From Raja brachyura (lineage: Eukaryota), in contig OY740798.1 of the NCBI GenBank assembly GCA_963514005.1, forward strand, positions 51,646,001 through 51,710,000: 64,000 nt of DNA. Reading direction: 5' to 3'. The notes under the pieces were generated by a model. That model was not told where the DNA came from and did not search any database. It worked only from the letters and a program-made list of their open reading frames with translations. The translations under genes were made by a program, and so were the position numbers. Of this stretch, positions 29,267-62,109 are shown one piece after another. The first letter of the stretch is position 1. Every line of letters begins with the position of its first letter.

Positions 29267-29311
29267 GTTTTGACAAAATAGAAAATGAAGTCAATGAAAA
29301 TGTCGATAAAG
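29267..29311 (+). CDS. 45-bp micro-exon, copy 1 (GFDKIENEVNENVDK)
   Basis: CTTTTTTATTCTGCAG acceptor and AAG|GTAAAA donor; only the phase-1 frame is open. Confidence 0.75.
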
Positions 29312-29399
29312 GTAAAAGTCTTCATTTCCAATAGTTACTGTATTTTGAATGTTTGCTTCAAGTAGAAATTTAGATCATTACACATGATCCAAATGTTCT

Positions 29400-30085
29400 C
29401 AAAACACAAAGCATCTGGGTATTCAATTATCTGGATATTCAAATTACTAGAAAATATAAATCTTTATTCAATGCAAACTATATGCCCTTACTTACTAAAT
29501 TAAATGCTTTGATTACATTTTGGAAACACTATTGATGTCTTTAATAGGCAGAATAAATGCCATAAAAATGATTTTTCTGCCACAAATCTTATATCTATTT
29601 CAATCAATACCAATATATTGACCTACATTTTTTTTTAAACTTGACTCTGATATCACAAATTTCATATGGGACTATAAGTACTTGTTGGACAATTCTGCCC
29701 AGCAGGTAGATTGGATAGCAATGGAGAGAGAGGACTGCTCTCCTTTTAATATAGGAGCGATCCTTCTCTCACCGATAAAACTGAATAATATAATATACAA
29801 GAAAAATCCAATTATTCATCGTACAATACGAACGAGGAGACAAATAAAATCAACTTTCAAATTAAGAAATCTATCACGTCGCTCTCCTATTGTTAATAAT
29901 CCGCCGTTTAAACCATCTACTGTCAATAAAATGTTTACACACTGGGAAAGAATAGAAATATTTTTTACAAAAGTATTTAAAACAGAAAAGACCCCCATTG
30001 CAGAATTGATTATCTTTGGAACAATGGAGACCTGCTCTGAGCTGACTTCGTTCCAAGAGAGTTTCCTTAACTATGGCTTAATAAC
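29400..30085 (+). mobile_element. Decayed L1-type LINE ORF2 fragment (repeated in each array unit)
   Basis: Translates as YLDIQIT...NYMPLLTKL...SLIGRINAIKMIFLPQILYLFQSIPI...ITNFIW, typical of the region downstream of the RT core in L1-clade elements. Confidence 0.75.
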
Positions 30086-30352
30086 GAGAGGACAAGTTGG
30101 TCCAAAGGGCCTGTTTCCACACTGTATGACTACGACTCTGTCTTTGGCATGTAGGAAGAAACCCGCACGTTCACAGGGGGGGGAACGTGCAAACGCCACA
30201 CAGACATCACCCGGTGGTCAGGATCGAAACCGGGTCTCTGGCGCTGCGCCGCTGCGCCGACCCTTTCACTTCAAACTTTATACTAGATTTATTTCATTGT
30301 CTCATTCACAACAAAGTTTCACGTTGAATAAATTAGTTTTATTTTTTTACTG

Positions 30353-32649
30353 TAGCAATGTTACAAAATTTTGAGATTTTAAAAATCAAGTCTGCAATTT
30401 ATCCCATCAGATAAAGCATAAAAAGAAGTTGAATTTGACACCTAATTCACTTTCATATCTTCAGTATTAAGAAAGTTATGGCCATTTTCATACTCGGAAA
30501 TTAGCATCTTGTTCCCCATTGCCTTTCAATTGACAACTCAAAAGCTGTGATCTGGAACAGTTAAAAGCCCATAACTTTCTTAAAAATTAAGAAAAGCAAT
30601 GAAATTTTCAGTTATTATAGATTGAAGCATTCTGAAACAAATATTAAACAATCTTACTTGGATGACCTGAAATTAAAGCATATAATTAGTTAGTTATCTA
30701 ATTGTAGCTAATTACAAAATTCAATGAGTAGATCTAAACATTTATCCATTTCTTAAGAAAAGAAAAACTTTTTTTAAATTGCCTAAGTGTCCAAATAACA
30801 TTCACACAATAATCCACAATATAACATAATTTTTAAATCTCATTTTCATGAATTTCTGGGCCAAATGGAAGGAATTTAGTGTTTGATTCCTGTAAATTAA
30901 TGGCCATTTAAATCAACTAGCGAGTGGGTTTTAGTGGAATGCGGTGAATTGGAACGTTGCGGTTCAGGCACGTGCCGTGAGTAATTACTCAGGGTAGGCA
31001 CTCGTCCGCTTTAAAAAAAAAATTAAACCACGCATGCGCAATTTGTTCTCCCCGTTAAATAAATAAATAAATAAAAACGGTGACATTTCAATTTGCCCAA
31101 GGCTTCCTAGTCCTAGACCAATTGGGGAACAGTTCCTTTCACAGCGTGTGGAGAGTCTGTGCCAGGGGTAAAGTTGTGGGGAGGGCACGAGTATTGAGAA
31201 GGAGGGTGTCGGGGATACTGCCAGTAACTCACTCACCGCTACCGCAGCTCTCCGGGCGCGAAGCCACGCACTGTAGCTGGGGATAGAAGCAGCTCGGGGA
31301 GCTACGAGCGGCCACCGGGACCTGACAGCAGAACTGGCCGCCACTTCAGCGCCTTCTGCCGGCCCGCTCACCTTTGGCAGTGCTCTCCGTCGGAACACCT
31401 GTCACCTGCCGTTCGCCGACTTCGCTCATGTCAGCGGCTTCCTGCAAATCCTTAAATTCGCACAGCCCAGTAACCTCAATCGCGCTGTCGGAATTTAAGG
31501 ACATGAGTGAGGCCAGCGAGCGGCAGGAGAGAGGTTTTTAGACGGAGAGCTGCCTGAGGTGAGCGACTGGCAGAAGGAGCTAAGGTGGCGGCTGGTTCCG
31601 CTGTCCGGCCCGGCGGCCGCTCAGCCACCCGAGCTAATTCTCTCTCTTCTCCCCCCCCCCCCGGCCTCAGAGCGGTGGCATCCCACGCCTCCGTGCAAGG
31701 AGCATCGCAAGTGGATGCTCCCGACCCCTCATTCATAACATTCGTGCCCTCCCCGCAACTTTACCCCGGGCCAGACTCCCCAAACGCTGTGAAAGAAGCG
31801 CTCCCCCCACCCACACACCCCGGGAAATACGGTATTTAAAAACGTAAACACAAAATGTACTTACCACATTATTGGTACACGACAAACCATAGATGAAAAC
31901 CCCGCCAAGAAACTTGCGCTGCGCATACGCATCAGTCTACTGCGCATGCGCAGTGCAGCAAAGGCAGAATTTCTGCTGCCTTCAGCCCTGCTTGAAACTG
32001 ACGGCTTCAGGCAGTGCTGACGGCACGTGGGCTGCACAGAGCTTCCCGTGTTACAAGCGCTGCGGATGAAAGGCACGGAGAATTATGCCTACCTAAGAGA
32101 TCGATCTTTTACATAGGCATAATTCTCCCATGCCTTTATTATTCATATTTAATTATTACTATGTTATAATTTTAGTCAGGGTAGGCAGTGCCTACCTTGC
32201 CTACCCTGACGGCACGTGCCTGTTGCGGTTAGCGGTGAAGTCGGGAGGAAAAATACTGTTTTTTCATACATTTTTTTGGACCCCATTTCGCAACATGAAA
32301 AAGTTATTAAAGCCTCCCGAAAAACCAACTTTTAATATAAAAATAAACGATTTACCTTTTTTTCTCCCCTACGCAAAATCCTTCCGGTTGTCTGTGCTCA
32401 CGGCTTTTGAAGGTGATTTTTAAATTACTCTAGTTAATAAATAATTTAGAGTAATTTAAAAACACCTTCATTCATGAAATGTCGGAGCGATTTTTCTTCC
32501 GCAACGAAATTGCCCGACATTCATTGATTATCCCTGCCTGTGGAAAAACGGCACTTTAAGCCCGCCCCCCTCTGAAAGGCGCCAAAGTCACGCACACGGG
32601 GAGCGGCAGAACTGCAGCGCTGCTCAAGGTAAGTTTTGTAACATACCTA
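30353..32649. mobile_element. Non-autonomous hAT-like DNA transposon (also at 49999-52297 and 58614-60912)
   Basis: Imperfect TIRs (TAGCAATGTTACAAAATTT versus reverse complement TAGGTATGTTACAAAACTT); TTTACTG duplicated on both sides; the empty site is visible in other units. Confidence 0.75.
30965..32222. mobile_element. Nested non-autonomous hAT element (also at 50613-51870 and 59228-60485)
   Basis: Perfect 14-bp TIR CAGGCACGTGCCGT; perfect 8-bp TSD TTGCGGTT (30957-30964 and 32223-32230); subterminal CAGGGTAGGCA repeats. Confidence 0.88.
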
Positions 32650-33799
32650 TTTACTGGTGTTTAGAATAGATGATTTGGGATGTTCAGTTGTTTAAAATCT
32701 GCTTGGGTGAGACACTTAGTCAAAGATCACTGAAACAGGCCCTTCGGCCCAACTTGCCGTTGTCAACCAAGGTGCCCCATCTAAACTAGTCCCACCTGCC
32801 CGTGATTGGCCCATTTCCATCAATCTATGCTTTTACTAAAACTCTCATTTTGACCACTTCCGGTCTGCGTTGTAATTAAATATGCGCAAAAACGATCCCC
32901 CATAGCGCTAACATTTTTCGCCACCTTACTCACCGTTCTCCTCTGCTGCAAGTCAAATAAGTTTTGTCCCGATCGGTGAAATATTATAAAAGTTATTGGT
33001 CTGTTATTCGCCAGGACGGCGACACCCCTTCCGGCACCCACTGTCAATCACCGGCCGCGAGAATAAAGCTGAGGGAGCGTTGTGAGCAGAGTGCGAGCTG
33101 TGTTCTGTGTTCTACGAGCGGGGGACCACACCACCCCTTCCCACATACACCCCCTCCCCTATCCCCACAACCCCCTCTCCTCTGCACCCCCCCCCCACAC
33201 CCCCCTCCCCTACACCCCACCTTCCCCTCAACCACCCCCTCCCCCACACTCCCTCCTACCACACACGCCCCTCCTCCCTATCAACCACCCCCATCCACAC
33301 ACCACCCCTACTCCCACCCCCACCATCCCCCCTACCCCCCCCCCCCACCCATGAGGTTGGAGGAGGTGCAGGTGAACCTCTGCCTCAGCTGGAAAGACTG
33401 CTTGGGTCCTTGGATGGAGTCGAGGGGGGAGGTAAAGCGACATTTGTAGCATTTCCTGTGGTTGCAAGGGAAAGTACCAGAGGAAGGGGGTGATTTGTGT
33501 GGGAAGGGACGAATTGACCAGGGAATTGGTTCAGGTAGTCCTTGCTTTCGCCATCCTTCCCGTCCCCTTCACAGCTCTCCCACAGCCTACTCTCTCTGCC
33601 TCTTCCTTTTTTTCCCCTCCCCACCGCCCCACATCAGTGTGAAGAAGGTCTCGACCCGAAACGTCCCCTATTCCTTCGCTCCATAGATGTTGCCTCACCC
33701 GCTGAGTTTCTCCAGCATTTTTGTCTACCGTCGGTTTTTCCAGCATCTGCAGTTCCTTCTTAAACATCAGGTTTAATTAAGTTCTTTTTTATTCTGCAG

Positions 33800-33844
33800 G
33801 TTTTGGCAAAATAGAAAATGTTGTCAATGAAAATGTCGATAAAG
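33800..33844 (+). CDS. 45-bp micro-exon, copy 2 (GFGKIENVVNENVDK)
   Basis: Same acceptor and donor as copy 1; phase 1-1. Confidence 0.75.
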
Positions 33845-34191
33845 GTAAAAGTCTTCATTTCCAATAGTTACTGTATTTTGAATGTTTGCTTCAAGTAGAA
33901 ATTTAGATCATTACACATGATCCAAATGTTCTCAAAACACAAAGCATCTGGGTATTCAATTATCTGGATATTCAAATTACTAGAAAATATAAATCTTTAT
34001 TCAATGCAAACTATATGCCCTTACTTACTAAATTAAATGCTTTGATTACATTTTGGAAACACTATTGATGTCTTTAATAGGCAGAATAAATGCCATAAAA
34101 ATGATTTTTCTGCCACAAATCTTATATCTATTTCAATCAATACCAATATATTGACCTAAATTTTTTTTAAAAACTTGACTCTGATATCACA

Positions 34192-34833
34192 TAGAAACAT
34201 AGAAATTAGGTGCAGGAGTAGGCACCTTCGAGCCTGCACCGCCATTCAATATGATCATGGCTGATCATCCAACTACCTGCCTTCTCTCCATACCCCCTGA
34301 TCCCCTTAGCCACAAGGGCCACATCTAACTCCCTCTTAAATATAGCCAATGAACTGGCCTCAACTACCCTCTGTGGCAGAGAGTTCCAGAGACACACCAC
34401 TCTCTGTGTGAAAAAAGTCCTTCTCATCTCGGTCCTAAAGGATTTCCCCCTTATCCTTAAGCTGTGACCCCTTGTCCTGGACCTCCCCAACATCGGGAAC
34501 AATCTTCCTGCATCTGGCCTGTCCAACCCCTTAAGAATTTTGTAAGTTTTTATAAGATCCCCTCTCAATCTCCTAAATTCTAGAGAGTATAAACCGAGTT
34601 TATACAGTCTTTGTTCATAAGACAGTCCTGACATCCCAGGAATCAGTCTGGTGAACCTTCTCTGCACTCCCTCTATGGCAATAATGTCCTTCCTCAGATT
34701 TGGAGACCAGAACTGTACGCAATACTCCAGGTGTGGCCTCACCAAGACCCTATACAACTGAAGTAGAACCTCCCTGCTCCTATACTCAAATCCTTTTGCT
34801 ATGAAGCTATCACAATGATATCGCTATGATTGC
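34192..34833 (-). mobile_element. 5'-truncated CR1 inserted in the L1 fragment (also at about 38.3, 42.3, 46.4, 55.0 and 62.5 kb)
   Basis: [15 protein letters not shown]...LEFRRLRGDLI ORF; (CATAGAAA)n tail; TATCACA TSD. The empty site 'ctgatatcacaaatttc' is seen at about 29650, 49295 and 57910. Confidence 0.9.
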
Positions 34834-37800
34834 TATCACAAATTTCATATGGGACTATAAGTACTTGTTGGACAATTCTGCCCAGCAGGTAGATTGGATA
34901 GCAATGGAGAGAGAGGACTGCTCTCCTTTTAATATAGGAGCGATCCTTCTCTCACCAATACAACTGAATAATATAATATACAAGAAAAATCCAATTATTC
35001 ATCGTACAATACGAACGAGGAGACAAATAAAATCAACTTTCAAATTAAGAAATCTATCACGTCACTCTCCTATTGTTAATAATCCGCCGTTTAAACCATC
35101 TACTGTCAATAAAATGTTTACACACTGGGAAAGAATAGAAATATTTTTTACAAAAGTATTTAAAACAGAAAAGAACCCCAATGCAGAATTGATTATCTTT
35201 GGAACAATGGAGACCGGCTCTGAGCTGACTTCGTTCCAAGAGAGTTTCCTTAACTATGGCTTAATAACGAGAGGACAAGTTGGTCCAAAGGGCCTGTTTC
35301 CACACTGTATGACTACGACTCTGTCTTTGGGATGTAGGAAGAAACCCGCACGTTCACAGGGGGGGAACGTGCAAACGCCACACAGACAGCACCCGGTGGT
35401 CAGGATCGAAACCGGGTCTCTGGCGCCGCGCCACTGCGCCGACCCTTTCACTTCAAACTTTACACTAGATTTATTTGATTGTCTCTTTCACAACAAAGTT
35501 TCACGTTGAATAAATTAGTTTTATTTTTTTACTGGTGTTGAGAATAGATGATTTGGGATGTTCAGTTGTTTAAAATCAGCTTGGGTGAGACACTTAGTCA
35601 AAGATCACTGAAACAGGCCCTTCGGCCCAACTTGCCGTTGTCAACCAAGGTGCCCCATCTAAACTAGTCCCACCTGCCCGTGATTGGCCCATTTCCATCA
35701 ATCTATGCTTTTACTAAAACTCTCATCTTGACCACTTCCGGTCTGCGTTGTTATTAAATATGCGCAAAAACGATCCCCCATAGCGCTAACATTTTTCGCC
35801 ACCTTACTCACCGTTCTCCTCTGCTGCAAGTCAAATAAGTTTTGTCCCGATCGGTGAAATATTATAAAAGTTATTGGTCTGTTATTCGCCAGGAAGGCGA
35901 CACCCCTTCCGGCACCTGCTGTCAATCACCGGCCGCGAGAATAAAGCTGAGGGAGCGTTGTGAGCAGAGTGCGAGCTGTGTTCTGTGTTCTACGAGCGGG
36001 GGCCCACACCACCCCTTCCCACATACACCCCCTCCCCTATCCTCACAACCCCCTCTCCTCTGCACCCCCCCACACCCCCCTCCCTTACACCCCACCTTCC
36101 CCTCAACCACCCCCTCCCCCACACTCCCTCCTACCACACACGCCCCTCCTCCCTACCAACCGCCCCCATTCACAAACCTCCCCTACTCCCACCCCCACCA
36201 TCCCCGTCTCCCCGTCCACCCCCCCCCCCCCCCCCCCCCCCCACCCATGAGGTTGGAGGAGGTGCAGGTGAACCTCTGCCTCAGCTGGAAAGACTACTTG
36301 GGTCCTTGGATGGAGTCGAGGGGGAAGGTAAAGCGACATTTGTAGCATTTCCTGTGGTTGCAAGGGAAAGTACCAGAGGAAGGGGGTGATTTGTGTAGGA
36401 AGGGGCGAATTGACCAGGGAATTGGTTCAGGTAGTCCTTGCTTTCGCCATCCTTCCCATCCCCTTCACAGAGGACAAGTTGGTCCAAAGGGCCTGTTTCC
36501 ACACTGTATGACTACGACTCTGTCTTTGGCATGTAGGAAGAAACCCGCACGTTCACAGGGGGGGAACGTGCAAACGCCACACAGACAGCAACCGGTGGTC
36601 AGGATCGAAACCGGGTCTCTGGCGCTGCGCCACTGCGCCGACCCTTTCACTTCAAACTTTACACTAGATTTATTTGATTGTCTCTTTCACAACAAAGTTT
36701 CACGTTGAATAAATTAGTTTTATTTTTTTACTGGTGTTGAGAATAGATGATTTGGGATGTTCAGTTGTTTAAAATCTGCTTGGGTGAGACACTTAATCAA
36801 AGATCACTGAAACAGGCCCTTCGGCCCAACTTGCCGTTGTCAACCAAGGTGCCCCATCTAAACTAGTCCCACCTGCCCGTGATTGGCCCATTTCCATCAA
36901 TCTATGCTTTTACTAAAACTCTCATCTTGACCACTTCCGGTCTGCGTTGTAATTAAATATGCGCAAAAACGATCCCCCATAGCGCTAACATTTTTCGCCA
37001 CCTTACTCACCGTTCTCCTCTGCTGCAAGTCAAATAGGTTTTGTCCCGATTGGTGAAATATTATAAAAGTTATTGGTCTGTTATTCGCCAGGACGGCGAC
37101 ACCCCTTCCGGCACTCGCTGTCAATCACCGGCCGCGAGAATAAAGCTGAGGGAGCGTTGTGAGCAGAGTGCGAGCTGTGTTCTGTGTTCTACGAGCGGGC
37201 GCCCACACACCCCCTTCCCACATACACCCCCTCCCCTATCCCCACAACCCCCTCTCCTCTGCACCCCCCCCCCCCACACCCCCCTCCCCTACACCCCACC
37301 TTCCCCTCAACCACCCCCTCCCCCACACTCCCTCCTACCACACACGCCCCTCCTCACTACCACACCCCCCCCATCCACACACCTCCCCTACTCCCACCCC
37401 CACCATCCCCCGTACCCCCCCACCCCCCCCCCCCCACCCATGAGGTTGGAGGAGGTGCAGGTAAACCTCTGCCTCTGCTTGGGTCCTTGGATGGAGTCGA
37501 GGGGGAGGTAAAGCGACATTTGTAGCATTTCCTGTGGTTGCAAGGGAAAGTACCAGAGGAAGGGGGTGATTTGTGTGGGAAGGGACGAATTGACCAGGGA
37601 ATTGGTTCAGGTAGTCCTTGCTTTCGCCATCCTTCCCGTCCCCTTCACAGCTCTCCCACAGCCTACTCTCTCTGCCTCTTCCTTTTTTTCCCCTCCCCAC
37701 CGCCCCACATCAGTGTGAAGAAGGTCTCGACCCGAAACGTCCCCTATTCCTTCGCTCCATAGATGTTGCCTCACCCGCTGAGTTTCTCCAGCATTTTTGT

Positions 37801-37875
37801 CTACCGTCGGTTTTTCCAGCATCTGCAGTTCCTTCTTAAACATCAGGTTTAATTAAGTTCTTTTTTATTCTGCAG

Positions 37876-37920
37876 GTTTTGGCAAAATAGAAAATGTTGT
37901 CAATGAAAATGTCGATAAAG
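37876..37920 (+). CDS. 45-bp micro-exon, copy 3
   Basis: Identical to copy 2, with intact AG/GT. Confidence 0.75.
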
Positions 37921-40900
37921 GTAAAAGTCTTCATTTCCAATAGTTACTGTATTTTGAATGTTTGCTTCAAGTAGAAATTTAGATCATTACACATGATCCA
38001 AATGTTCTCAAAACACAAAGCATCTGGGTATTCAATTATCTGGATATTCAAATTACTAGAAAATATAAATCTTTATTCAATGCAAACTATATGCCCTTAC
38101 TTACTAAATTAAATGCTTTGATTACATTTTGGAAACACTATTGATGTCTTTAATAGGCAGAATAAATGCCATAAAAATGATTTTTCTGCCACAAATCTTA
38201 TATCTATTTCAATCAATACCAATATATTGACCTAAATTTTTTTTAAAAACTTGACTCTGATATCACATAGAAACATAGAAATTAGGTGCAGGAGTAGGCA
38301 CCTTCGAGCCTGCACCGCCATTCAATATGATCATGGCTGATCATCCAACTACCTGCCTTCTCTCCATACCCCCTGATCCCCTTAGCCACAAGGGCCACAT
38401 CTAACTCCCTCTTAAATATAGCCAATGAACTGGCCTCAACTACCCTCTGTGGCAGAGAGTTCCAGAGACACACACTCTCTGTGTGAAAAAAGTCCTTCTC
38501 ATCTCGGTCCTAAAGGATTTCCCCCTTATCCTTAAGCTGTGACCCCTTGTCCTGGACCTCCCCAACATCGGGAACAATCTTCCTGCATCTGGCCTGTCCA
38601 ACCCCTTAAGAATTTTGTAAGTTTTTATAAGATCCCCTCTCAATCTCCTAAATTCTAGAGAGTATAAACCGAGTTTATACAGTCTTTGTTCATAAGACAG
38701 TCCTGACATCCCAGGAATCAGTCTGGTGAACCTTCTCTGCACTCCCTCTATGGCAATAATGTCCTTCCTCAGATTTGGAGACCAGAACTGTACGCAATAC
38801 TCCAGGTGTGGCCTCACCAAGACCCTATACAACTGAAGTAGAACCTCCCTGCTCCTATACTCAAATCCTTTTGCTATGAAGCTATCACAATGATATCGCT
38901 ATGATTGCTATCACAAATTTCATATGGGACTATAAGTACTTGTTGGACAATTCTGCCCAGCAGGTAGATTGGATAGCAATGGAGAGAGAGGACTGCTCTC
39001 CTTTTAATATAGGAGCGATCCTTCTCTCACCAATACAACTGAATAATATAATATACAAGAAAAATCCAATTATTCATCGTACAATACGAACGAGGAGACA
39101 AATAAAATCAACTTTCAAATTAAGAAATCTATCACGTCGCTCTCCTATTGTTAATAATCCGCCGTTTAAACCATCTACTGTCAATAAAATGTTTACACAC
39201 TGGGAAAGAATAGAAATATTTTTTACAAAAGTATTTAAAACAGAAAAGAACCCCAATGCAGAATTGATTATCTTTGGAACAATGGAGACCGGCTCTGAGC
39301 TGACTTCGTTCCAAGAGAGTTTCCTTAACTATGGCTTAATAACGAGAGGACAAGTTGGTCCAAAGGGCCTGTTTCCACACTGTATGACTACGACTCTGTC
39401 TTTGGGATGTAGGAAGAAACCCGCACGTTCACAGGGGGGGAACGTGCAAACGCCACACAGACAGCACCCGGTGGTCAGGATCGAAACCGGGTCTCTGGCG
39501 CCGCGCCACTGCGCCGACCCTTTCACTTCAAACTTTACACTAGATTTATTTGATTGTCTCTTTCACAACAAAGTTTCACGTTGAATAAATTAGTTTTATT
39601 TTTTTACTGGTGTTGAGAATAGATGATTTGGGATGTTCAGTTGTTTAAAATCAGCTTGGGTGAGACACTTAGTCAAAGATCACTGAAACAGGCCCTTCGG
39701 CCCAACTTGCCGTTGTCAACCAAGGTGCCCCATCTAAACTAGTCCCACCTGCCCGTGATTGGCCCATTTCCATCAATCTATGCTTTTACTAAAACTCTCA
39801 TCTTGACCACTTCCGGTCTGCGTTGTTATTAAATATGCGCAAAAACGATCCCCCATAGCGCTAACATTTTTCGCCACCTTACTCACCGTTCTCCTCTGCT
39901 GCAAGTCAAATAAGTTTTGTCCCGATCGGTGAAATATTATAAAAGTTATTGGTCTGTTATTCACCAGGAAGGCGACACCCCTTCCGGCACCTGCTGTCAA
40001 TCACCGGCCGCGAGAATAAAGCTGAGGGAGCGTTGTGAGCAGAGTGCGAGCTGTGTTCTGTGTTCTACGAGCGGGGGCCCACACCACCCCTTCCCACATA
40101 CACCCCCTCCCCTATCCTCACAACCCCCTCTCCTCTGCACCCCCCCACACCCCCCTCCCTTACACCCCACCTTCCCCTCAACCACCCCCTCCCCCACACT
40201 CCCTCCTACCACACACGCCCCTCCTCCCTACCAACCGCCCCCATTCACAAACCTCCCCTACTCCCACCCCCACCATCCCCGTCTCCCCGTCCACCCCCCC
40301 CCCACCCATGAGGTTGGAGGAGGTGCAGGTGAACCTCTGCCTCAGCTGGAAAGACTACTTGGGTCCTTGGATGGAGTCGAGGGGGAAGGTAAAGCGACAT
40401 TTGTAGCATTTCCTGTGGTTGCAAGGGAAAGTACCAGAGGAAGGGGGTGATTTGTGTAGGAAGGGGCGAATTGACCAGGGAATTGGTTCAGATAGTCCTT
40501 GCTTTCGCCATCCTCCCCATCCCCTTCACAGAGGACAAGTTGGTCCAAAGGGCCTGTTTCCACACTGTATGACTACGACTCTGTCTTTGGCATGTAGGAA
40601 GAAACCCGCACGTTCACAGGGGGGGAACGTGCAAACGCCACACAGACAGCAACCGGTGGTCAGGATCGAAACCGGGTCTCTGGCGCTGCGCCACTGCGCC
40701 GACCCTTTCACTTCAAACTTTACACTAGATTTATTTGATTGTCTCTTTCACAACAAAGTTTCACGTTGAATAAATTAGTTTTATTTTTTTACTGGTGTTG
40801 AGAATAGATGATTTGGGATGTTCAGTTGTTTAAAATCTGCTTGGGTGAGACACTTAATCAAAGATCACTGAAACAGGCCCTTCGGCCCAACTTGCCGTTG

Positions 40901-41936: not shown

Positions 41937-41981
41937 GTTTTGGCAAAATAGAAAATGTTGTCAATGAAAATGTCGATAAAG
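41937..41981 (+). CDS. 45-bp micro-exon, copy 4
   Basis: Identical to copy 2, with intact AG/GT. Confidence 0.75.
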
Positions 41982-48912: not shown

Positions 48913-48957
48913 GTTTTGGCAAAATAGAAAATGTTGTCAATGAAAATGTCGATAAAG
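48913..48957 (+). CDS. 45-bp micro-exon, copy 6
   Basis: Identical to copy 2, with intact AG/GT. Confidence 0.75.
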
Positions 48958-51900
48958 GTAAAAGTCTTCATTTCCAATAGTTACTGTATTTTGAATGTTT
49001 GCTTCAAGTAGAACTTTAGATCATTACACATGATCCAAATGTTCTCAAAACACAAAGCATCTGGGTATTCAATTATCTGGATATTCAAATTACTAGAAAA
49101 TATAAATCTTTATTCAATGCAAACTATATGCCCTTACTTACTAAATTAAATGCTTTGATTACATTTTGGAAACACTATTGATGTCTTTAATAGGCAGAAT
49201 AAATGCCATAAAAATGATTTTTCTGCCACAAATCTTATATCTATTTCAATCAATACCAATATATTGACCTACATTTTTTTTTAAACTTGACTCTGATATC
49301 ACAAATTTCATATGGGACTATAAGTACTTGTTGGACAATTCTGCCCAGCAGGTAGATTGGATAGCAATGGAGAGAGAGGACTGCTCTCCTTTTAATATAG
49401 GAGCGATCCTTCTCTCACCGATAAAACTGAATAATATAATATACAAGAAAAATCCAATTATTCATCGTACAATACGAACGAGGAGACAAATAAAATCAAC
49501 TTTCAAATTAAGAAATCTATCACGTCGCTCTCCTATTGTTAATAATCCGCCGTTTAAACCATCTACTGTCAATAAAATGTTTACACACTGGGAAAGAATA
49601 GAAATATTTTTTACAAAAGTATTTAAAACAGAAAAGACCCCCATTGCAGAATTGATTATCTTTGGAACAATGGAGACCGGCTCTGAGCTGACTTTGTTCC
49701 AAGAGAGTTTCCTTAACTATGGCTTAATAACGAGAGGACAAGTTGGTCCAAAGGGCCTGTTTCCACACTGTATGACTACGACTCTGTCTTTGGGATGTAG
49801 GAAGAAACCCGCACGTTCACAGGGGGGGGAACGTGCAAACGCCACACAGACATCACCCGGTGGTCAGGATCGAAACCGGGTCTCTGGCGCTGCGCCGCTG
49901 CGCCGACCCTTTCACTTCAAACTTTACACTAGATTTATTTCATTGTCTCATTCACAACAAAGTTTCACGTTGAATAAATTAGTTTTATTTTTTTACTGTA
50001 GCAATGTTACAAAATTTTGAGATTTTAAAAATCAAGTCTGCAATTTATCCCATCAGATAAAGCATAAAAAGAAGTTGAATTTGACACCTAATTCACTTTC
50101 ATATCTTCAGTATTAAGAAAATTATGGCCATTTTCATACTCGGAAATTAGCATCTTGTTCCCCATTGCCTTTCAATTGACTTAACTCAAAAGCTGTGATC
50201 TGGAACAGTTAAAAGCCCATAACTTTCTTAAAAATTAAGAAAAGCAATGAAATTTTCAGTTATTATAGATTGAAGCATTCTGAAACAAATATTAAACAAT
50301 CTTACTTGGATGACCTGAAATTAAAGCATATAATTAGTTAGTTATCTAATTGTAGCTAATTACAAAATTCAATGAGTAGATCTAAACATTTATCCATTTC
50401 TTAAGAAAAGAAAAACTTTTTTTAAATTGCCTAAGTGTCCAAATAACATTCACACAATAATCCACAATATAACATAATTTTTAAATCTCATTTTCATGAA
50501 TTTCTGGGCCAAATGGAAGGAATTTAGTGTTTGATTCCTGTAAATTAATGGCCATTTAAATCAACTAGCGAGTGGGTTTTAGTGGAATGCGGTGAATTGG
50601 AACGTTGCGGTTCAGGCACGTGCCGTGAGTAATTACTCAGGGTAGGCACTCGTCCGCTTTGAAAAAAAAATTAAACCACGCATGCGCAATTTGTTCTCCC
50701 CGTTAAATAAATAAATAAATAAAAACGGTGACATTTCAATTTGCCCAAGGCTTCCTAGTCCTAGACCAATTGGGGAACAGTTCCTTTCACAGCGTGTGGA
50801 GAGTCTGTGCCAGGGGTAAAGTTGTGGGGAGGGCACGAGTATTGAGAAGGAGGGTGTCGGGGATACTGCCAGTAACTCACTCACCGCTACCGCAGCTCTC
50901 CGGGCGCGAAGCCACGCACTGTAGCTGGGGATAGAAGCAGCTCGGGGAGCTACGAGCGGCCACCGGGACCTGACAGCAGAACTGGCCGCCACTTCAGCGC
51001 CTTCTGCCGGCCCGCTCACCTTTGGCAGTGCTCTCCGTCGGAACACCTGTCACCTGCCGTTCGCCGACTTCGCTCATGTCAGCGGCTTCCTGCAAATCCT
51101 TAAATTCGCACAGCCCAGTAACCTCAATCGCGCTGTCGGAATTTAAGGACATGAGTGAGGCCAGCGAGCGGCAGGAGAGAGGTTTTTAGACGGAGAGCTG
51201 CCTGAGGTGAGCGACTGGCAGAAGGAGCTAAGGTGGCGGCTGGTTCCGCTGTCCGGCCCGGCGGCCGCTCAGCCACCCGAGCTAATTCTCTCTCTTCTCC
51301 CCCCCCCCCCGGCCTCAGAGCGGTGGCATCCCACGCCTCCGTGCAAGGAGCATCGCAAGTGGATGCTCCCGACCCCTCATTCATAACATTCGTGCCCTCC
51401 CCGCAACTTTACCCCGGGCCAGACTCCCCAAACGCTGTGAAAGAAGCGCTCCCCCCACCCACACACCCCGGGAAATACGGTATTTAAAAACGTAAACACA
51501 AAATGTACTTACCACATTATTGGTACACGACAAACCATAGATGAAAACCCCGCCAAGAAACTTGCGCTGCGCATACGCATCAGTCTACTGCGCATGCGCA
51601 GTGCAGCAAAGGCAGAATTTCTGCTGCCTTCAGCCCTGCTTGAAACTGACGGCTTCAGGCAGTGCTGACGGCACGTGGGCTGCACAGAGCTTCCCGTGTT
51701 ACAAGCGCTGCGGATGAAAGGCACGGAGAATTATGCCTACCTAAGAGATCGATCTTTTACATAGGCATAATTCTCCCATGCCTTTATTATTCATATTTAA
51801 TTATTACTATGTTATAATTTTAGTCAGGGTAGGCAGTGCCTACCTTGCCTACCCTGACGGCACGTGCCTGTTGCGGTTAGCGGTGAAGTCGGGAGGAAAA

Positions 51901-54632
51901 ATACTGTTTTTTCATACATTTTTTTGGACCCCATTTCGCAACATGAAAAAGTTATTAAAGCCTCCCGAAAAACCAACTTTTAATATAAAAATAAACGATT
52001 TACCTTTTTTTCTCCCCTACGCAAAATCCTTCCGGTTGTCTGTGCTCACGGCTTTTGAAGGTGATTTTTAAATTACTCTAGTTAATAAATAATTTAGAGT
52101 AATTTAAAAACACCTTCATTCATGAAATGTCGGAGCGATTTTTCTTCCGCAACGAAATTGCCCGACATTCATTGATTATCCCTGCCTGTGGAAAAACGGC
52201 ACTTTAAGCCCGCCCCCCTCTGAAAGGCGCCAAAGTCACGCACACGGGGAGCGGCAGAACTGCAGCGCTGCTCAAGGTAAGTTTTGTAACATACCTATTT
52301 ACTGGTGTTTAGAATAGATGATTTGGGATGTTCAGTTGTTTAAAATCTGCTTGGGTGAGACACTTAGTCAAAGATCACTGAAACAGGCCCTTCGGCCCAA
52401 CTTGCCGTTGTCAACCAAGGTGCCCCATCTAAACTAGTCCCACCTGCCCGTGATTGGCCCATTTCCATCAATCTATGCTTTTACTAAAACTCTCATTTTG
52501 ACCACTTCCGGTCTGCGTTGTAATTAAATATGCGCAAAAACGATCCCCCATAGCGCTAACATTTTTCGCCACCTTACTCACCGTTCTCCTCTGCTGCAAG
52601 TCAAATAAGTTTTGTCCCGATCGGTGAAATATTATAAAAGTTATTGGTCTGTTATTCGCCAGGACGGCGACACCCCTTCCGGCACCCACTGTCAATCACC
52701 GGCCGCGAGAATAAAGCTGAGGGAGCGTTGTGAGCAGAGTGCGAGCTGTGTTCTGTGTTCTACGAGCGGGGGACCACACCACCCCTTCCCACATACACCC
52801 CCTCCCCTATCCCCACAACCCCCTCTCCTCTGCACCCCCCCACACCCCCCTCCCCTACACCCCACCTTCCCCTCAACCACCCCCTCCCCCACACTCCCTC
52901 CTACCACACACGCCCCTCCTCCCTATCAACCACCCCCATCCACACACCACCCCTACTCCCACCCCCACCATCCCCCCTACCCCCCCCCCCCCCCCCACCC
53001 ATGAGGTTGGAGGAGGTGCAGGTGAACCTCTGCCTCAGCTGGAAAGACTACTTGGGTCCTTGGATGGAGTCGAGGGGGAAGGTAAAGCGACATTTGTAGC
53101 ATTTCCTGTGGTTGCAAGGGAAAGTACCAGAGGAAGGGGGTGATTTGTGTAGGAAGGGGCGAATTGACCAGGGAATTGGTTCAGATAGTCCTTGCTTTCG
53201 CCATCCTTCCCATCCCCTTCACAGAGGACAAGTTGGTCCAAAGGGCCTGTTTCCACACTGTATGACTACGACTCTGTCTTTGGCATGTAGGAAGAAACCC
53301 GCACGTTCACAGGGGGGGAACGTGCAAACGCCACACAGACAGCAACCGGTGGTCAGGATCGAAACCGGGTCTCTGGCGCTGCGCCACTGCGCCGACCCTT
53401 TCACTTCAAACTTTACACTAGATTTATTTGATTGTCTCTTTCACAACAAAGTTTCACGTTGAATAAATTAGTTTTATTTTTTTACTGGTGTTGAGAATAG
53501 ATGATTTGGGATGTTCAGTTGTTTAAAATCTGCTTGGGTGAGACACTTAATCAAAGATCACTGAAACAGGCCCTTCGGCCCAACTTGCCGTTGTCAACCA
53601 AGGTGCCCCATCTAAACTAGTCCCACCTGCCCGTGATTGGCCCATTTCCATCAATCTATGCTTTTACTAAAACTCTCATCTTGACCACTTCCGGTCTGCG
53701 TTGTAATTAAATATGCGCAAAAACGATCCCCCATAGCGCTAACATTTTTCGCCACCTTACTCACCGTTCTCCTCTGCTGCAAGTCAAATAGGTTTTGTCC
53801 CGATTGGTGAAATATTATAAAAGTTATTGGTCTGTTATTCGCCAGGACGGCGACACCCCTTCCGGCACTCGCTGTCAATCACCGGCCGCGAGAATAAAGC
53901 TGAGGGAGCGTTGTGAGCAGAGTGCGAGCTGTGTTCTGTGTTCTACGAGCGGGCGCCCACACCACCCCTTCCCACATACACCCCCTCCCCTATCCCCACA
54001 ACCCCCTCTCCTCTGCACCCCCCCCCCACACCCCCCTCCCCTACACCCCACCTTCCCCTCAACCACCCCCTCCCCCACACTCCCTCCTACCACACACGCC
54101 CCTCCTCACTACCACACCCCCCCCATCCACACACCTCCCCTACTCCCACCCCCACCATCCCCCGTACCCCCCCACCCCCCCCCCCCCCCCCACCCATGAG
54201 GTTGGAGGAGGTGCAGGTAAACCTCTGCCTCTGCTTGGGTCCTTGGATGGAGTCGAGGGGGGAGGTAAAGCGACATTTGTAGCATTTCCTGTGGTTGCAA
54301 GGGAAAGTACCAGAGGAAGGGGGTTATTTGTGTGGGAAGGGACGAATTGACCAGGGAATTGGTTCAGGTAGTCCTTGCTTTCGCCATCCTTCCCGTCCCC
54401 TTCACAGCTCTCCCACAGCCTACTCTCTCTGCCTCTTCCTTTTTTTCCCCTCCCCACCGCCCCACATCAGTGTGAAGAAGGTCTCGACCCGAAACGTCCC
54501 CTATTCCTTCGCTCCATAGATGTTGCCTCACCCGCTGAGTTTCTCCAGCATTTTTGTCTACTGTCGGTTTTTCCAGCATCTGCAGTTCCTTCTTAAACAT
54601 CAGGTTTAATTAAGTTCTTTTTTATTCTGCAG

Positions 54633-54677
54633 GTTTTGGCAAAATAGAAAATGTTGTCAATGAAAATGTCGATAAAG
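54633..54677 (+). CDS. 45-bp micro-exon, copy 7
   Basis: Identical to copy 2, with intact AG/GT. Confidence 0.75.
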
Positions 54678-57527
54678 GTAAAAGTCTTCATTTCCAATAG
54701 TTACTGTATTTTGAATGTTTGCTTCAAGTAGAAATTTAGATCATTACACATGATCCAAATGTTCTCAAAACACAAAGCATCTGGGTATTCAATTATCTGG
54801 ATATTCAAATTACTAGAAAATATAAATCTTTATTCAATGCAAACTATATGCCCTTACTTACTAAATTAAATGCTTTGATTACATTTTGGAAACACTATTG
54901 ATGTCTTTAATAGGCAGAATAAATGCCATAAAAATGATTTTTCTGCCACAAATCTTATATCTATTTCAATCAATACCAATATATTGACCTAAATTTTTTT
55001 TAAAAACTTGACTCTGATATCACATAGAAACATAGAAATTAGGTGCAGGAGTAGGCACCTTCGAGCCTGCACCGCCATTCAATATGATCATGGCTGATCA
55101 TCCAACTACCTGCCTTCTCTCCATACCCCCTGATCCCCTTAGCCACAAGGGCCACATCTAACTCCCTCTTAAATATAGCCAATGAACTGGCCTCAACTAC
55201 CCTCTGTGGCAGAGAGTTCCAGAGACACACCACTCTCTGTGTGAAAAAAGTCCTTCTCATCTCGGTCCTAAAGGATTTCCCCCTTATCCTTAAGCTGTGA
55301 CCCCTTGTCCTGGACCTCCCCAACATCGGGAACAATCTTCCTGCATCTGGCCTGTCCAACCCCTTAAGAATTTTGTAAGTTTTTATAAGATCCCCTCTCA
55401 ATCTCCTAAATTCTAGAGAGTATAAACCGAGTTTATACAGTCTTTGTTCATAAGACAGTCCTGACATCCCAGGAATCAGTCTGGTGAACCTTCTCTGCAC
55501 TCCCTCTATGGCAATAATGTCCTTCCTCAGATTTGGAGACCAGAACTGTACGCAATACTCCAGGTGTGGCCTCACCAAGACCCTATACAACTGAAGTAGA
55601 ACCTCCCTGCTCCTATACTCAAATCCTTTAGCTATCACAATGATATCGCTATGATTGCTATCACAAATTTCATATGGGACTATAAGTACTTGTTGGACAA
55701 TTCTGCCCAGCAGGTAGATTGGATAGCAATGGAGAGAGAGGACTGCTCTCCTTTTAATATAGGAGCGATCCTTCTCTCACCAATACAACTGAATAATATA
55801 ATATACAAGAAAAATCCAATTATTCATCGTACAATACGAACGAGGAGACAAATAAAATCAACTTTCAAATTAAGAAATCTATCACGTCGCTCTCCTATTG
55901 TTAATAATCCGTCGTTTAAACCATCTACTGTCAATAAAATGTTTACACACTGGGAAAGAATAGAAATATTTTTTACAAAAGTATTTAAAACAGAAAAGAA
56001 CCCCAATGCAGAATTGATTATCTTTGGAACAATGGAGACCGGCTCTGAGCTGACTTCGTTCCAAGAGAGTTTCCTTAACTATGGCTTAATAACGAGAGGA
56101 CAAGTTGGTCCAAAGGGCCTGTTTCCACACTGTATGACTACGACTCTGTCTTTGGGATGTAGGAAGAAACCCGCACGTTCACAGGGGGGGAACGTGCAAA
56201 CGCCACACAGACAGCACCCGGTGGTCAGGATCGAAACCGGGTCTCTGGCGCCGCGCCACTGCGCCGACCCTTTCACTTCAAACTTTACACTAGATTTATT
56301 TGATTGTCTCTTTCACAACAAAGTTTCACGTTGAATAAATTAGTTTTATTTTTTTACTGGTGTTGAGAATAGATGATTTGGGATGTTCAGTTGTTTAAAA
56401 TCAGCTTGGGTGAGACACTTAGTCAAAGATCACTGAAACAGGCCCTTCGGCCCAACTTGCCGTTGTCAACCAAGGTGCCCCATCTAAACTAGTCCCACCT
56501 GCCCGTGATTGGCCCATTTCCATCAATCTATGCTTTTACTAAAACTCTCATCTTGACCACTTCCGGTCTGCGTTGTTATTAAATATGCGCAAAAACGATC
56601 CCCCATAGCGCTAACATTTTTCGCCACCTTACTCACCGTTCTCCTCTGCTGCAAGTCAAATAAGTTTTGTCCCGATCGGTGAAATATTATAAAAGTTATT
56701 GGTCTGTTATTCGCCAGGAAGGCGACACCCCTTCCGGCACCTGCTGTCAATCACCGGCCGCGAGAATAAAGCTGAGGGAGCGTTGTGAGCAGAGTGCGAG
56801 CTGTGTTCTGTGTTCTACGAGCGGGGGCCCACACCACCCCTTCCCACATACACCCCCTCCCCTATCCTCACAACCCCCTCTCCTCTGCACCCCCCCACAC
56901 CCCCCTCCCCTACACCCCACCTTCCCCTCAACCACCCCCTCCCTCCCCCACACTCCCTCCTACCACACACGCCCCTCCTCCCTACCAACCGCCCCTATTC
57001 ACAAACCTCCCCTACTCCCACCCCCACCATCCCCGTCTCCCCGTCCACCCCCCCCCCCCCCCCCCCCCCCCCCCACCCATGAGGTTGGAGGAGGTGCAGG
57101 TGAACCTCTGCCTCAGCTGGAAAGACTGCTTGGGTCCTTGGATGGAGTCGAGGGGGGAGGTAAAGCAACATTTGTAGCATTTCCTGTGGTTGCAAGGGAA
57201 AGTACCAGAGGAAGGGGGTGATTTGTGTGGAAAGGGACGAATTGACCAGGGAATTGGTTCAGGTAGTCCTTGCTTTCGCCATCCTTCCCGTCCCCTTCAC
57301 AGCTCTCCCACAGCCTACTCTCTCTGCCTCTTCCTTTTTTTCCCCTCCCCACCGCCCCACATCAGTGTGAAGAAGGTCTCGACCCGAAACGTCCCCTATT
57401 CCTTCGCTCCATAGATGTTGCCTCACCCGCTGAGTTTCTCCAGCATTTTTGTCTACCGTCGGTTTTTCCAGCATCTGCAGTTCCTTCTTAAACATCAGGT
57501 TTAATTAAGTTCTTTTTTATTCTGCAG

Positions 57528-57572
57528 GTTTTGGCAAAATAGAAAATGTTGTCAATGAAAATGTCGATAAAG
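57528..57572 (+). CDS. 45-bp micro-exon, copy 8
   Basis: Identical to copy 2, with intact AG/GT. Confidence 0.75.
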
Positions 57573-60500
57573 GTAAAAGTCTTCATTTCCAATAGTTACT
57601 GTATTTTGAATGTTTGCTTCAAGTAGAAATTTAGATCATTACACATGATCCAAATGTTCTCAAAACACAAAGCATCTGGGTATTCAATTATCTGGATATT
57701 CAAATTACTAGAAAATATAAATCTTTATTCAATGCAAACTATATGCCCTTACTTACTAAATTAAATGCTTTGATTACATTTTGGAAACACTATTGATGTC
57801 TTTAATAGGCAGAATAAATGCCATAAAAATGATTTTTCTGCCACAAATCTTATATCTATTTCAATCAATACCAATATATTGACCTACATTTTTTTTTAAA
57901 CTTGACTCTGATATCACAAATTTCATATGGGACTATAAGTACTTGTTGGACAATTCTGCCCAGCAGGTAGATTGGATAGCAATGGAGAGAGAGGACTGCT
58001 CTCCTTTTAATATAGGAGCGATCCTTCTCTCACCGATAAAACTGAATAATATAATATACAAGAAAAATCCAATTATTCATCGTACAATACGAACGAGGAG
58101 ACAAATAAAATCAACTTTCAAATTAAGAAATCTATCACGTCGCTCTCCTATTGTTAATAATCCGCCGTTTAAACCATCTACTGTCAATAAAATGTTTACA
58201 CACTGGGAAAGAATAGAAATATTTTTTACAAAAGTATTTAAAACAGAAAAGACCCCCATTGCAGAATTGATTATCTTTGGAACAATGGAGACCGGCTCTG
58301 AGCTGACTTCGTTCCAAGAGAGTTTCCTTAACTATGGCTTAATAACGAGAGGACAAGTTGGTCCAAAGGGCCTGTTTCCACACTGTATGACTACGACTCT
58401 GTCTTTGGGATGTAGGAAGAAACCCGCACGTTCACAGGGGGGGGAACGTGCAAACGCCACACAGACATCACCCGGTGGTCAGGATCGAAACCGGGTCTCT
58501 GGCGCTGCGCCGCTGCGCCGACCCTTTCACTTCAAACTTTACACTAGATTTATTTCATTGTCTCATTCACAACAAAGTTTCACGTTGAATAAATTAGTTT
58601 TATTTTTTTACTGTAGCAATGTTACAAAATTTTGAGATTTTAAAAATCAAGTCTGCAATTTATCCCATCAGATAAAGCATAAAAAGAAGTTGAATTTGAC
58701 ACCTAATTCACTTTCATATCTTCAGTATTAAGAAAATTATGGCCATTTTCATACTCGGAAATTAGCATCTTGTTCCCCATTGCCTTTCAATTGACTTAAC
58801 TCAAAAGCTGTGATCTGGAACAGTTAAAAGCCCATAACTTTCTTAAAAATTAAGAAAAGCAATGAAATTTTCAGTTATTATAGATTGAAGCATTCTGAAA
58901 CAAATATTAAACAATCTTACTTGGATGACCTGAAATTAAAGCATATAATTAGTTAGTTATCTAATTGTAGCTAATTACAAAATTCAATGAGTAGATCTAA
59001 ACATTTATCCATTTCTTAAGAAAAGAAAAACTTTTTTTAAATTGCCTAAGTGTCCAAATAACATTCACACAATAATCCACAATATAACATAATTTTTAAA
59101 TCTCATTTTCATGAATTTCTGGGCCAAATGGAAGGAATTTAGTGTTTGATTCCTGTAAATTAATGGCCATTTAAATCAACTAGCGAGTGGGTTTTAGTGG
59201 AATGCGGTGAATTGGAACGTTGCGGTTCAGGCACGTGCCGTGAGTAATTACTCAGGGTAGGCACTCGTCCGCTTTAAAAAAAAAATTAAACCACGCATGC
59301 GCAATTTGTTCTCCCCGTTAAATAAATAAATAAATAAAAACGGTGACATTTCAATTTGCCCAAGGCTTCCTAGTCCTAGACCAATTGGGGAACAGTTCCT
59401 TTCACAGCGTGTGGAGAGTCTGTGCCAGGGGTAAAGTTGTGGGGAGGGCACGAGTATTGAGAAGGAGGGTGTCGGGGATACTGCCAGTAACTCACTCACC
59501 GCTACCGCAGCTCTCCGGGCGCGAAGCCACGCACTGTAGCTGGGGATAGAAGCAGCTCGGGGAGCTACGAGCGGCCACCGGGACCTGACAGCAGAACTGG
59601 CCGCCACTTCAGCGCCTTCTGCCGGCCCGCTCACCTTTGGCAGTGCTCTCCGTCGGAACACCTGTCACCTGCCGTTCGCCGACTTCGCTCATGTCAGCGG
59701 CTTCCTGCAAATCCTTAAATTCGCACAGCCCAGTAACCTCAATCGCGCTGTCGGAATTTAAGGACATGAGTGAGGCCAGCGAGCGGCAGGAGAGAGGTTT
59801 TTAGACGGAGAGCTGCCTGAGGTGAGCGACTGGCAGAAGGAGCTAAGGTGGCGGCTGGTTCCGCTGTCCGGCCCGGCGGCCGCTCAGCCACCCGAGCTAA
59901 TTCTCTCTCTTCTCCCCCCCCCCCCGGCCTCAGAGCGGTGGCATCCCACGCCTCCGTGCAAGGAGCATCGCAAGTGGATGCTCCCGACCCCTCATTCATA
60001 ACATTCGTGCCCTCCCCGCAACTTTACCCCGGGCCAGACTCCCCAAACGCTGTGAAAGAAGCGCTCCCCCCACCCACACACCCCGGGAAATACGGTATTT
60101 AAAAACGTAAACACAAAATGTACTTACCACATTATTGGTACACGACAAACCATAGATGAAAACCCCGCCAAGAAACTTGCGCTGCGCATACGCATCAGTC
60201 TACTGCGCATGCGCAGTGCAGCAAAGGCAGAATTTCTGCTGCCTTCAGCCCTGCTTGAAACTGACGGCTTCAGGCAGTGCTGACGGCACGTGGGCTGCAC
60301 AGAGCTTCCCGTGTTACAAGCGCTGCGGATGAAAGGCACGGAGAATTATGCCTACCTAAGAGATCGATCTTTTACATAGGCATAATTCTCCCATGCCTTT
60401 ATTATTCATATTTAATTATTACTATGTTATAATTTTAGTCAGGGTAGGCAGTGCCTACCTTGCCTACCCTGACGGCACGTGCCTGTTGCGGTTAGCGGTG

Positions 60501-62064
60501 AAGTCGGGAGGAAAAATACTGTTTTTTCATACATTTTTTTGGACCCCATTTCGCAACATGAAAAAGTTATTAAAGCCTCCCGAAAAACCAACTTTTAATA
60601 TAAAAATAAACGATTTACCTTTTTTTCTCCCCTACGCAAAATCCTTCCGGTTGTCTGTGCTCACGGCTTTTGAAGGTGATTTTTAAATTACTCTAGTTAA
60701 TAAATAATTTAGAGTAATTTAAAAACACCTTCATTCATGAAATGTCGGAGCGATTTTTCTTCCGCAACGAAATTGCCCGACATTCATTGATTATCCCTGC
60801 CTGTGGAAAAACGGCACTTTAAGCCCGCCCCCCTCTGAAAGGCGCCAAAGTCACGCACACGGGGAGCGGCAGAACTGCAGCGCTGCTCAAGGTAAGTTTT
60901 GTAACATACCTATTTACTGGTGTTTAGAATAGATGATTTGGGATGTTCAGTTGTTTAAAATCTGCTTGGGTGAGACACTTAGTCAAAGATCACTGAAACA
61001 GGCCCTTCGGCCCAACTTGCCGTTGTCAACCAAGGTGCCCCATCTAAACTAGTCCCACCTGCCCGTGATTGGCCCATTTCCATCAATCTATGCTTTTACT
61101 AAAACTCTCATTTTGACCACTTCCGGTCTGCGTTGTAATTAAATATGCGCAAAAACGATCCCCCATAGCGCTAACATTTTTCGCCACCTTACTCACCGTT
61201 CTCCTCTGCTGCAAGTCAAATAAGTTTTGTCCCGATCGGTGAAATATTATAAAAGTTATTGGTCTGTTATTCGCCAGGACGGCGACACCCCTTCCGGCAC
61301 CCACTGTCAATCACCGGCCGCGAGAATAAAGCTGAGGGAGCGTTGTGAGCAGAGTGCGAGCTGTGTTCTGTGTTCTACGAGCGGGGGACCACACCACCCC
61401 TTCCCACATACACCCCCTCCCCTATCCCCACAACCCCCTCTCCTCTGCACCCCCCCACACCCCCCTCCCCTACACCCCACCTTCCCCTCAACCACCCCCT
61501 CCCCCACACTCCCTCCTACCACACACGCCCCTCCTCCCTATCAACCACCCCCATCCACACACCACCCCTACTCCCACCCCCACCATCCCCCCTACCCCCC
61601 CCCCCCCCCCCACCCATGAGGTTGGAGGAGGTGCAGGTGAACCTCTGCCTCAGCTGGAAAGACTGCTTGGGTCCTTGGATGGAGTCGAGGGGGGAGGTAA
61701 AGCGACATTTGTAGCATTTCCTGTGGTTGCAAGGGAAAGTACCAGAGGAAGGGGGTGATTTGTGTGGGAAGGGACGAATTGACCAGGGAATTGGTTCAGG
61801 TAGTCCTTGCTTTCGCCATCCTTCCCGTCCCCTTCACAGCTCTCCCACAGCCTACTCTCTCTGCCTCTTCCTTTTTTTCCCCTCCCCACCGCCCCACATC
61901 AGTGTGAAGAAGGTCTCGACCCGAAACGTCCCCTATTCCTTCGCTCCATAGATGTTGCCTCACCCGCTGAGTTTCTCCAGCATTTTTGTCTACCGTCGGT
62001 TTTTCCAGCATCTGCAGTTCCTTCTTAAACATCAGGTTTAATTAAGTTCTTTTTTATTCTGCAG

Positions 62065-62109
62065 GTTTTGGCAAAATAGAAAATGTTGTCAATGAAAATG
62101 TCGATAAAG
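62065..62109 (+). CDS. 45-bp micro-exon, copy 9
   Basis: Identical to copy 2, with intact AG/GT. Confidence 0.75.

Follow-up and report, generated by a model that had tools for sequence, protein, structure and literature searches.

To our knowledge, there are very few genes in which exon amplification has altered the length of the spacer between immunoglobulin (Ig) domains. The classic case is the hinge of human IGHG3, where effector function is altered as a result. At a larger scale, kringle IV type 2 (KIV-2) of the LPA gene is a kilobase-scale tandem unit containing coding exons, which arose by unequal recombination, with protein length determined by the number of copies. Here we describe a locus of the skate Raja brachyura in which nine copies of a 45-nt candidate micro-exon are carried by a tandem macro-array downstream of Ig exons. 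It lies in a stretch of 64,000 nt (GCA_963514005.1, contig OY740798.1, positions 51,646,001 to 51,710,000 of the forward strand), which we call the window, and positions are counted from its first nucleotide. The 45-bp unit probably belongs to a skate gene of the B7-H6 (NCR3LG1)-like type, as a symmetrical (phase 1-1) cassette exon, and its transposon-rich intronic surroundings were amplified with it.

The IGHG3 hinge is encoded by 45-bp exons present in 2-5 copies, giving hinges of 32, 47, 62 or 77 residues (PMC8674132), and its repeat unit of ~200 bp is polymorphic in copy number in people (PMC8674132; PMC4202688). This is the closest known case to the skate locus as we read it: both have 45-bp (15-residue) exons that are tandemly duplicated between the Ig-domain exons of an immunoglobulin-superfamily gene, and in both the product is, or in the skate would be, a spacer between folded Ig domains that grows or shrinks by 15 residues at a time. 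The two share no sequence homology. The skate units are 2.9-5.7 kb long and rich in transposons, whereas the IGHG3 unit is ~200 bp, and the skate array holds at least nine copies, as read from one assembly, against up to five in IGHG3. The linkers also differ in kind, the IgG3 hinge being rich in Pro and Cys and rather rigid, while the skate linker is acidic or polar, lacks Pro and Cys in the window copies and is predicted to be disordered. LPA KIV-2 resembles the skate array in having a kilobase-scale tandem unit that carries coding sequence, but each of its units contains two exons and encodes a whole folded kringle domain rather than a 15-residue linker module, and the protein is not of the immune or Ig-superfamily type.

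The third comparison is with the linkers of orthologous skate proteins. These contain homologous 15-residue units (core GK-EN-VNE-VD) before the last Ig-like domain, and their isoforms differ in 15-residue steps; unlike the window, the ortholog models have intact upstream Ig exons, fewer annotated units (3-8) and unit sequences specific to each species, which suggests independent or concerted amplification. The literature that we searched contains no description of this linker in the B7-H6-like genes of cartilaginous fish. If our reading is correct, the 45-bp, phase-1 logic of the IgG3 hinge recurs in an unrelated and uncharacterized immune-type gene family of cartilaginous fish, at macrosatellite scale and with unit numbers that differ between species.

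The 45-nt unit and its counterpart in skate linkers

The original prediction, made by a model from the letters of the window, was that nine 45-nt copies lie between an acceptor-like motif and GTAAAAG, that their length is a multiple of three with phase 1-1 as the sole open frame, and that they share strand and phase with the upstream Ig exons. An exact search bears out each of these points. The 15-nt acceptor motif TTTTTTATTCTGCAG is found exactly nine times, always on the + strand and nowhere else in the window, as compared to 0.01 occurrences expected by chance (0 of 100 shuffles reach nine), and each occurrence ends one base 5' of one of the nine copy starts (Table 1). The 45 nt that follow are succeeded by GTAAAAG in 9/9 copies. 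The splice signals are intact throughout (tcttttttattctgcag, the 45 nt, then gtaaaag), with an AG acceptor preceded by a polypyrimidine tract and a GT donor. Copies 2-9 are identical to each other, while copy 1 has three substitutions, at 29273 and 29288-29289, all of which are non-synonymous (G>D, V>E). No further diverged copies were found on either strand of the window. Frames 0 and 1 of the 45-mer contain stops and the frame is open only from the third base, which places both flanking introns in phase 1, as in Ig exons A, B and C, which are likewise on the + strand. Translation of the open frame yields (G)FGKIENVVNENVDK, that is, a unit peptide GFGKIENVVNENVDK with the variant GFDKIENEVNENVDK in copy 1.

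Homology searches were run exon by exon. A full-library phmmer search with exon B identified a family of long multi-Ig proteins, the best match being Amblyraja radiata LOC116984368, while Leucoraja erinacea LOC129705966 and Rhinoraja longicauda LOC144602191 came from a second search; all three are automatic models that RefSeq names 'uncharacterized protein'. Their common architecture begins with a signal peptide and a V-C1 pair, present once or twice, followed by a transmembrane helix and a chain of Ig-like/C1-set domains; the repeat linker comes next, and an Ig-like domain is last. The best solved-structure match of the Leucoraja V-C1 part (residues 27-231) is human NCR3LG1 (B7-H6), with E = 1e-36, and the next, a generic C1 match, has E = 1e-19. 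This match was made on the N-terminus of the ortholog, the N-terminal exons of the Raja locus lying outside the window. By way of it, the immune-type protein of the original prediction is specified as the product of a putative B7-H6 (NCR3LG1)-like gene. The counterpart of exon A in the orthologs is the first domain after the membrane anchor, and the micro-exon array is downstream of exons A-F. The exon for the last Ig-like domain is not within the 64-kb window, and the array runs past the window end. The sole predicted transmembrane helix of the orthologs is positioned between the B7-H6-like V-C1 part and the C1-set chain, with the linker after it. Of 27 relatives, 23-27 conserve the Ig cysteine pairs that follow the helix, and a transmembrane helix is missing from one catshark model.

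In the orthologs, a run of 15-residue units in tandem (DYGKKENDVNEKVDE, CGKIENDVNEEVDE) directly precedes the last Ig-like domain. The unit is DYGKKENDVNE[D/K][A/V]DE in Amblyraja radiata (3-4 units per isoform), DYGK[K/N]END[V/L]NEKVDE in Leucoraja erinacea (4-6 units per isoform) and [D/V]CGKIENDVN[GG/EE]VDE in Rhinoraja longicauda (7-8 units per isoform). The window peptide is identical to the skate units at 8-10 of 15 residues, the core that it shares with them being G-K-x-E-N-x-V-N-E-x-V-D. The change in length by alternative splicing that had been proposed agrees with the annotated isoforms of the relatives, whose lengths step by exactly 15 residues (1271/1256 in Amblyraja, 1303/1288/1273 in Leucoraja). 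The isoforms of Rhinoraja differ, in addition, by one Ala at unit borders, as expected of a tandem CAG acceptor. In the stingray Hemitrygon akajei, with isoforms of 973 and 958 residues, the equivalent place is taken by 15-residue units of a different sequence. Units resemble each other more closely within a species than across species, as would follow from lineage-specific amplification or from concerted evolution. A counterpart of the peptide in related species is therefore at hand in three skates, at the equivalent position, and this comparison supports homology between the 45-mer and what appears to be a real cassette micro-exon of the skate B7-H6-like linker. The earlier view of the repeat as a stalk or tail following the C1 domains is replaced, since the ortholog models place it as a predicted linker between the chain of Ig domains and the final Ig-like domain.

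Table 1. Positions of the features discussed, numbered from the first nucleotide of the window.
Feature	Position	Strand	Basis or remark
Ig-like exon A, intact, phase 1-1	2172..2603	+	80% identical to A. radiata residues 522-667
C1-set exon B, intact, phase 1-1	6020..6397	+	C1-set E = 1e-12; 92% to A. radiata
C1-set exon C, intact, phase 1-1	7289..7588	+	C1-set E = 7e-16
N run	8977-9143		
Ig exon D, three pieces	11555-11721, 16847-16957, 22206-22340 (span 11555..22340)	+	tblastn of orthologs
Ig exon F	24072..24392	+	tblastn; counterpart in Rhinoraja and Narcine is the final domain ahead of the linker
Tandem macro-array	27865..64000, runs past window end	+	self-BLAST
C-rich, CCCTCC-like low-complexity tract	28580-28830		also in every A segment
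3' tail of dispersed SINE/LINE-tail repeat	29101..29236	+	30 nt before copy 1; recurs in every unit
Micro-exon copy 1 (variant GFDKIENEVNENVDK)	29267..29311	+	motif, frame
L1-type ORF2 fragment	29428..30374	+	human ORF2p residues 768-830 and onward; recurs in the intron after the micro-exon in every unit
Micro-exon copy 2 (GFGKIENVVNENVDK)	33800..33844	+	motif, frame; copy onto which public contigs were aligned
CR1-like reverse-transcriptase fragment	34192-34830	-	also in five further units
Micro-exon copy 3	37876..37920	+	motif, frame
Micro-exon copy 4	41937..41981	+	motif, frame
Micro-exon copy 5	46009..46053	+	motif, frame
Micro-exon copy 6	48913..48957	+	motif, frame
Micro-exon copy 7	54633..54677	+	motif, frame
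Micro-exon copy 8	57528..57572	+	motif, frame
Micro-exon copy 9	62065..62109	+	motif, frame

Coverage of the unit in public contigs

Public sequencing runs were searched with exons B and C as bait, which gave RNA-like contig sets X1 and X2-X5 (two organisms) and DNA sets X15-X20. We aligned the Logan contigs of X1, X2, X3 and X15 to positions 33600-34100. Depth is flat along each contig, so that partly filled bins give the borders of the aligned pieces (205.8, 44.2 and 106.2, multiplied by 7/17, equal the observed 84.7, 18.2 and 43.7). The stretch covered is 33804-33844 in X1 and 33798-33844 in X2 and X3, and the pieces from all three stop exactly at the predicted donor. These three sets have no variant letters in the exon and no coverage over the next 95 nt of intron, and the DNA run X15 continues past the exon into both flanks. 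Measured against the adjoining L1-like repeat, representation of the exon in X1-X3 exceeds that in X15 by a factor of 100 to 10,000. This enrichment fits RNA, with the reservation that depths of this kind are an unreliable measure.

The head-to-tail junction of units that the original prediction proposed to look for was found once, in X2 and X3, where a contig runs directly from the final bases of a unit into the first bases of the following one (...GTCGATAAAG to ATTATGGCAAAATAG...). The letters of this contig are ...GTCGATAAAG, ATTA and TGGCAAAATAG..., encoding VDK followed by DYGKIEN. The six additional bases covered in X2 and X3, 33798-33803 (AG plus GTTT), match the expectation for a junction of ...AAAG with GTTTTGGC, and their coverage hints at a unit start of the GFGK type in the transcript. 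The left side of the unit joint in X2 and X3 ends at 33825 and is followed by GATAAAG, which suggests that transcripts of this organism include a 33-nt unit variant without AATGAAAATGTC.

Transposon neighbors and the state of the locus

Several observations weigh against the reading of the 45 nt as an exon in use at this locus. The phase-1 frame is open in 57% of random 45-mers drawn from the array, and an open frame alone thus carries no meaning as exon evidence. The pattern of YAG, 45 nt and GTR is found at 18 sites in the array, of which the micro-exon accounts for nine. Taken by itself, the window sequence argues weakly for exon status. In addition, the micro-exon is flanked by the tail of a short or long interspersed nuclear element (SINE/LINE) on one side and by an L1 fragment on the other, and its frame is common with that of the ORF2 remnant 115 nt downstream. 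All of this would fit a 45-mer that is no exon at all but a splice-like motif with a fortuitously open frame in amplified intronic or transposon DNA. We consider this explanation most improbable. Against it stand the 8-10/15 identity to the linker units that three orthologs carry at the corresponding place, and the coverage of the exon alone in the RNA-like runs.

Copy number also speaks against it. In X15, 33787-33871 is low-copy and depth is 2-8 over the exon and ~90 nt on each side, as compared to millions over the neighboring SINE (summed, 33634-33769) and thousands over the L1-like repeat, with a sharp rise only at ~33957. No micro-exon copies are found outside the array in the window, the exon is without a match to L1 ORF2p, and none of the five other window copies of the SINE/LINE tail reaches into it. 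The micro-exon is not part of a high-copy transposon, and the case that the original prediction held to be most damaging to it, a 45-mer that belongs with its flanks to a dispersed element, is not what we find.

Two specific origins were considered and rejected. The L1 fragment begins ~115 nt after each micro-exon and is in the same reading frame, an apparent coincidence that does not indicate the origin of the exon. Derivation of the exon from L1, suggested by this common frame and by a weak 'FxK[IV]..N..K' resemblance, was rejected as the exon has no match to ORF2p while 29425-29618 does, the high-copy signal begins only ~115 nt after the exon, and the exon is common to other skates. Derivation from the upstream SINE/LINE tail was rejected since that repeat has five other copies in the window, none of which extends as far as the exon. 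A PDB search with the peptide of 33781-33864 returned coronavirus S2 heptad-repeat constructs (..ALGKLQDVVNQNAQ..) as the only solved-structure matches, which we attribute to a chance resemblance of polar and valine residues and not to homology.

The remaining points against exon use concern the locus itself and the source of the contigs. Across the nine copies, the micro-exon is no better conserved than its intronic flanks and no constraint is visible; within ~300 bp on each side there are six variable columns in total, three of them in the exon of copy 1. This equal conservation implies that the identity of the copies reflects their youth and not selection. Two young DIRS-like elements, which lie in opposite orientation, share about 86% identity and contain long intact open reading frames (ORFs), interrupt Ig exon D. 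No counterpart of exon E was found between 22340 and 24072 when the orthologs were compared with the window by tblastn; all three skate orthologs have domain E, either flanked by D and F or ahead of the linker, and its exon has apparently been deleted here. Exon F contains two in-frame TAA stops (DDGLF*SN, EKEF*LL). Among the contig sets, X1 was labeled by the tool as RNA, as a guess, and X2 and X3 as 'probably DNA'. The units in the RNA-like runs start with ATTAT (DYGK) while all nine window copies start with GTTTT (GFGK), and the transcripts could derive from another species or another locus. No protein from this locus was present in the databases searched, and the blank result among short transcript-derived proteins, obtained with the exon-B ORF as query, is uninformative.

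These observations are favorable to a relic array in a decaying paralog, in which the 45-mers stem from real linker exons and were recently amplified but are not translated, the locus being a pseudogene or on its way to becoming one. Exons D, E and F would then be three consecutive lost domains, and the low acidity of the window units, with a net charge of -1 as compared to -3 to -5 in the orthologs, would agree with such decay, as would the DYGK start of the expressed units and the lack of constraint on the exon. We regard this as a serious alternative but an unlikely one. Exons A, B and C are intact, as are the splice signals in all nine copies. Exons D and F are in phase 1-1, like A-C, so that the damaged exons can be skipped in frame. 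The domain encoded by exon F is missing from the Amblyraja and Leucoraja mRNAs as well, and this exon may be an old relic, a dead exon shared by these skates. The coverage of AG plus GTTT in X2 and X3 also fits a transcribed unit of the GFGK type. We favor an amplified cassette exon, of which all nine copies, and with them this particular locus, may be in use. The share of variable columns that fall in the 45 nt of copy 1 (3/6) exceeds the positional expectation (P about 0.005-0.04), although the numbers are small.

The predicted linker and the macro-array

In the preferred reading, each cassette exon would add 15 polar, mostly acidic residues to a linker, predicted to be unstructured, that in the orthologous proteins connects the chain of C1-type Ig domains with the last Ig-like domain. 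With phase 1 at both borders and a length that is a multiple of three, the reading frame is kept however many copies are included or skipped. Linker length could accordingly be changed in two ways, by recombination that alters the copy number of the gene and by cassette splicing of the transcript. An AlphaFold2 model of the L. erinacea protein, based on an alignment of 27 sequences, has a mean predicted local distance difference test (pLDDT) score of 78.7. Its linker residues 864-951 (six units) have pLDDT values of 32-45 and no secondary structure, with confident Ig sandwiches on both sides, and the last domain (952-1052) is modeled at 83-94. The repeat is thus predicted to be a disordered linker, and, judged from the model, it most likely serves as a charged and flexible spacer, its length determining how far the last domain can reach. 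The window copies are the least acidic of all units.

The tandem array of more than 36 kb in the original prediction is confirmed by self-BLAST, in which units that are 95-99% identical extend from 27865 to the window end. Tandem Repeats Finder, with a longest period of 500, reported no array, and self-BLAST was used in its place. The spacing of the micro-exons is 2895-5720 bp, and the units are made up of segments A (1.2 kb), E (0.6 kb, carrying the micro-exon), C (0.64 kb, CR1-like), L (0.7 kb, L1-like) and X (2.3 kb), with an A segment preceding each E segment. There are two unit subtypes, E-L-X-A' (three units) and E-C-L-A(-A) (six units), arranged in a higher-order pattern. This nested arrangement indicates several rounds of duplication instead of one. 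We infer from it that repeated unequal crossing-over between the kilobase-sized units may have produced the array, giving at least nine copies over 36 kb and at least two unit subtypes.

Near-identical repeats of kilobase scale (95-99%) are hard to assemble, and the copy number and higher-order pattern of an otherwise real array could have been collapsed or inflated in the assembly. An artefact of this kind is improbable in our judgment: the pattern is not the expected product of simple assembly stutter, and multiple units are present in the orthologous proteins as well.

A broader and rather speculative proposal, which we consider unlikely, is that genes of this family are exon amplifiers of macrosatellite scale. 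Each kilobase-scale repeat would contribute one in-frame 45-bp exon, expansion would have been independent in paralogs and species (3-4, 4-6, 7-8 and at least 9 units), and splicing would further tune the spacer of a ligand of the natural killer (NK) cell type; the length of this spacer would vary with the individual and the cell state and determine the reach or geometry of the last Ig-like domain. Should copy number prove polymorphic and the exons be in use, the locus would provide a natural system for the effects of linker length on a B7-H6-type ligand, and a clean example of the concerted evolution of exons in transposon-rich repeats. For annotation, it is a warning that 45-nt exons of this kind are invisible to ORF-based methods and that such a locus is hard to assemble.

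Two further features of the units were observed. The CR1-like reverse-transcriptase fragment is positioned between segments E and L in six of the nine units; the three units without it carry the 2.3-kb segment X, which distinguishes two unit lineages and marks the order of amplification events. The long C-rich tract of the A segments is the source of spurious proline-rich ORFs. The tract is not of one length in all units and may be a site prone to recombination.

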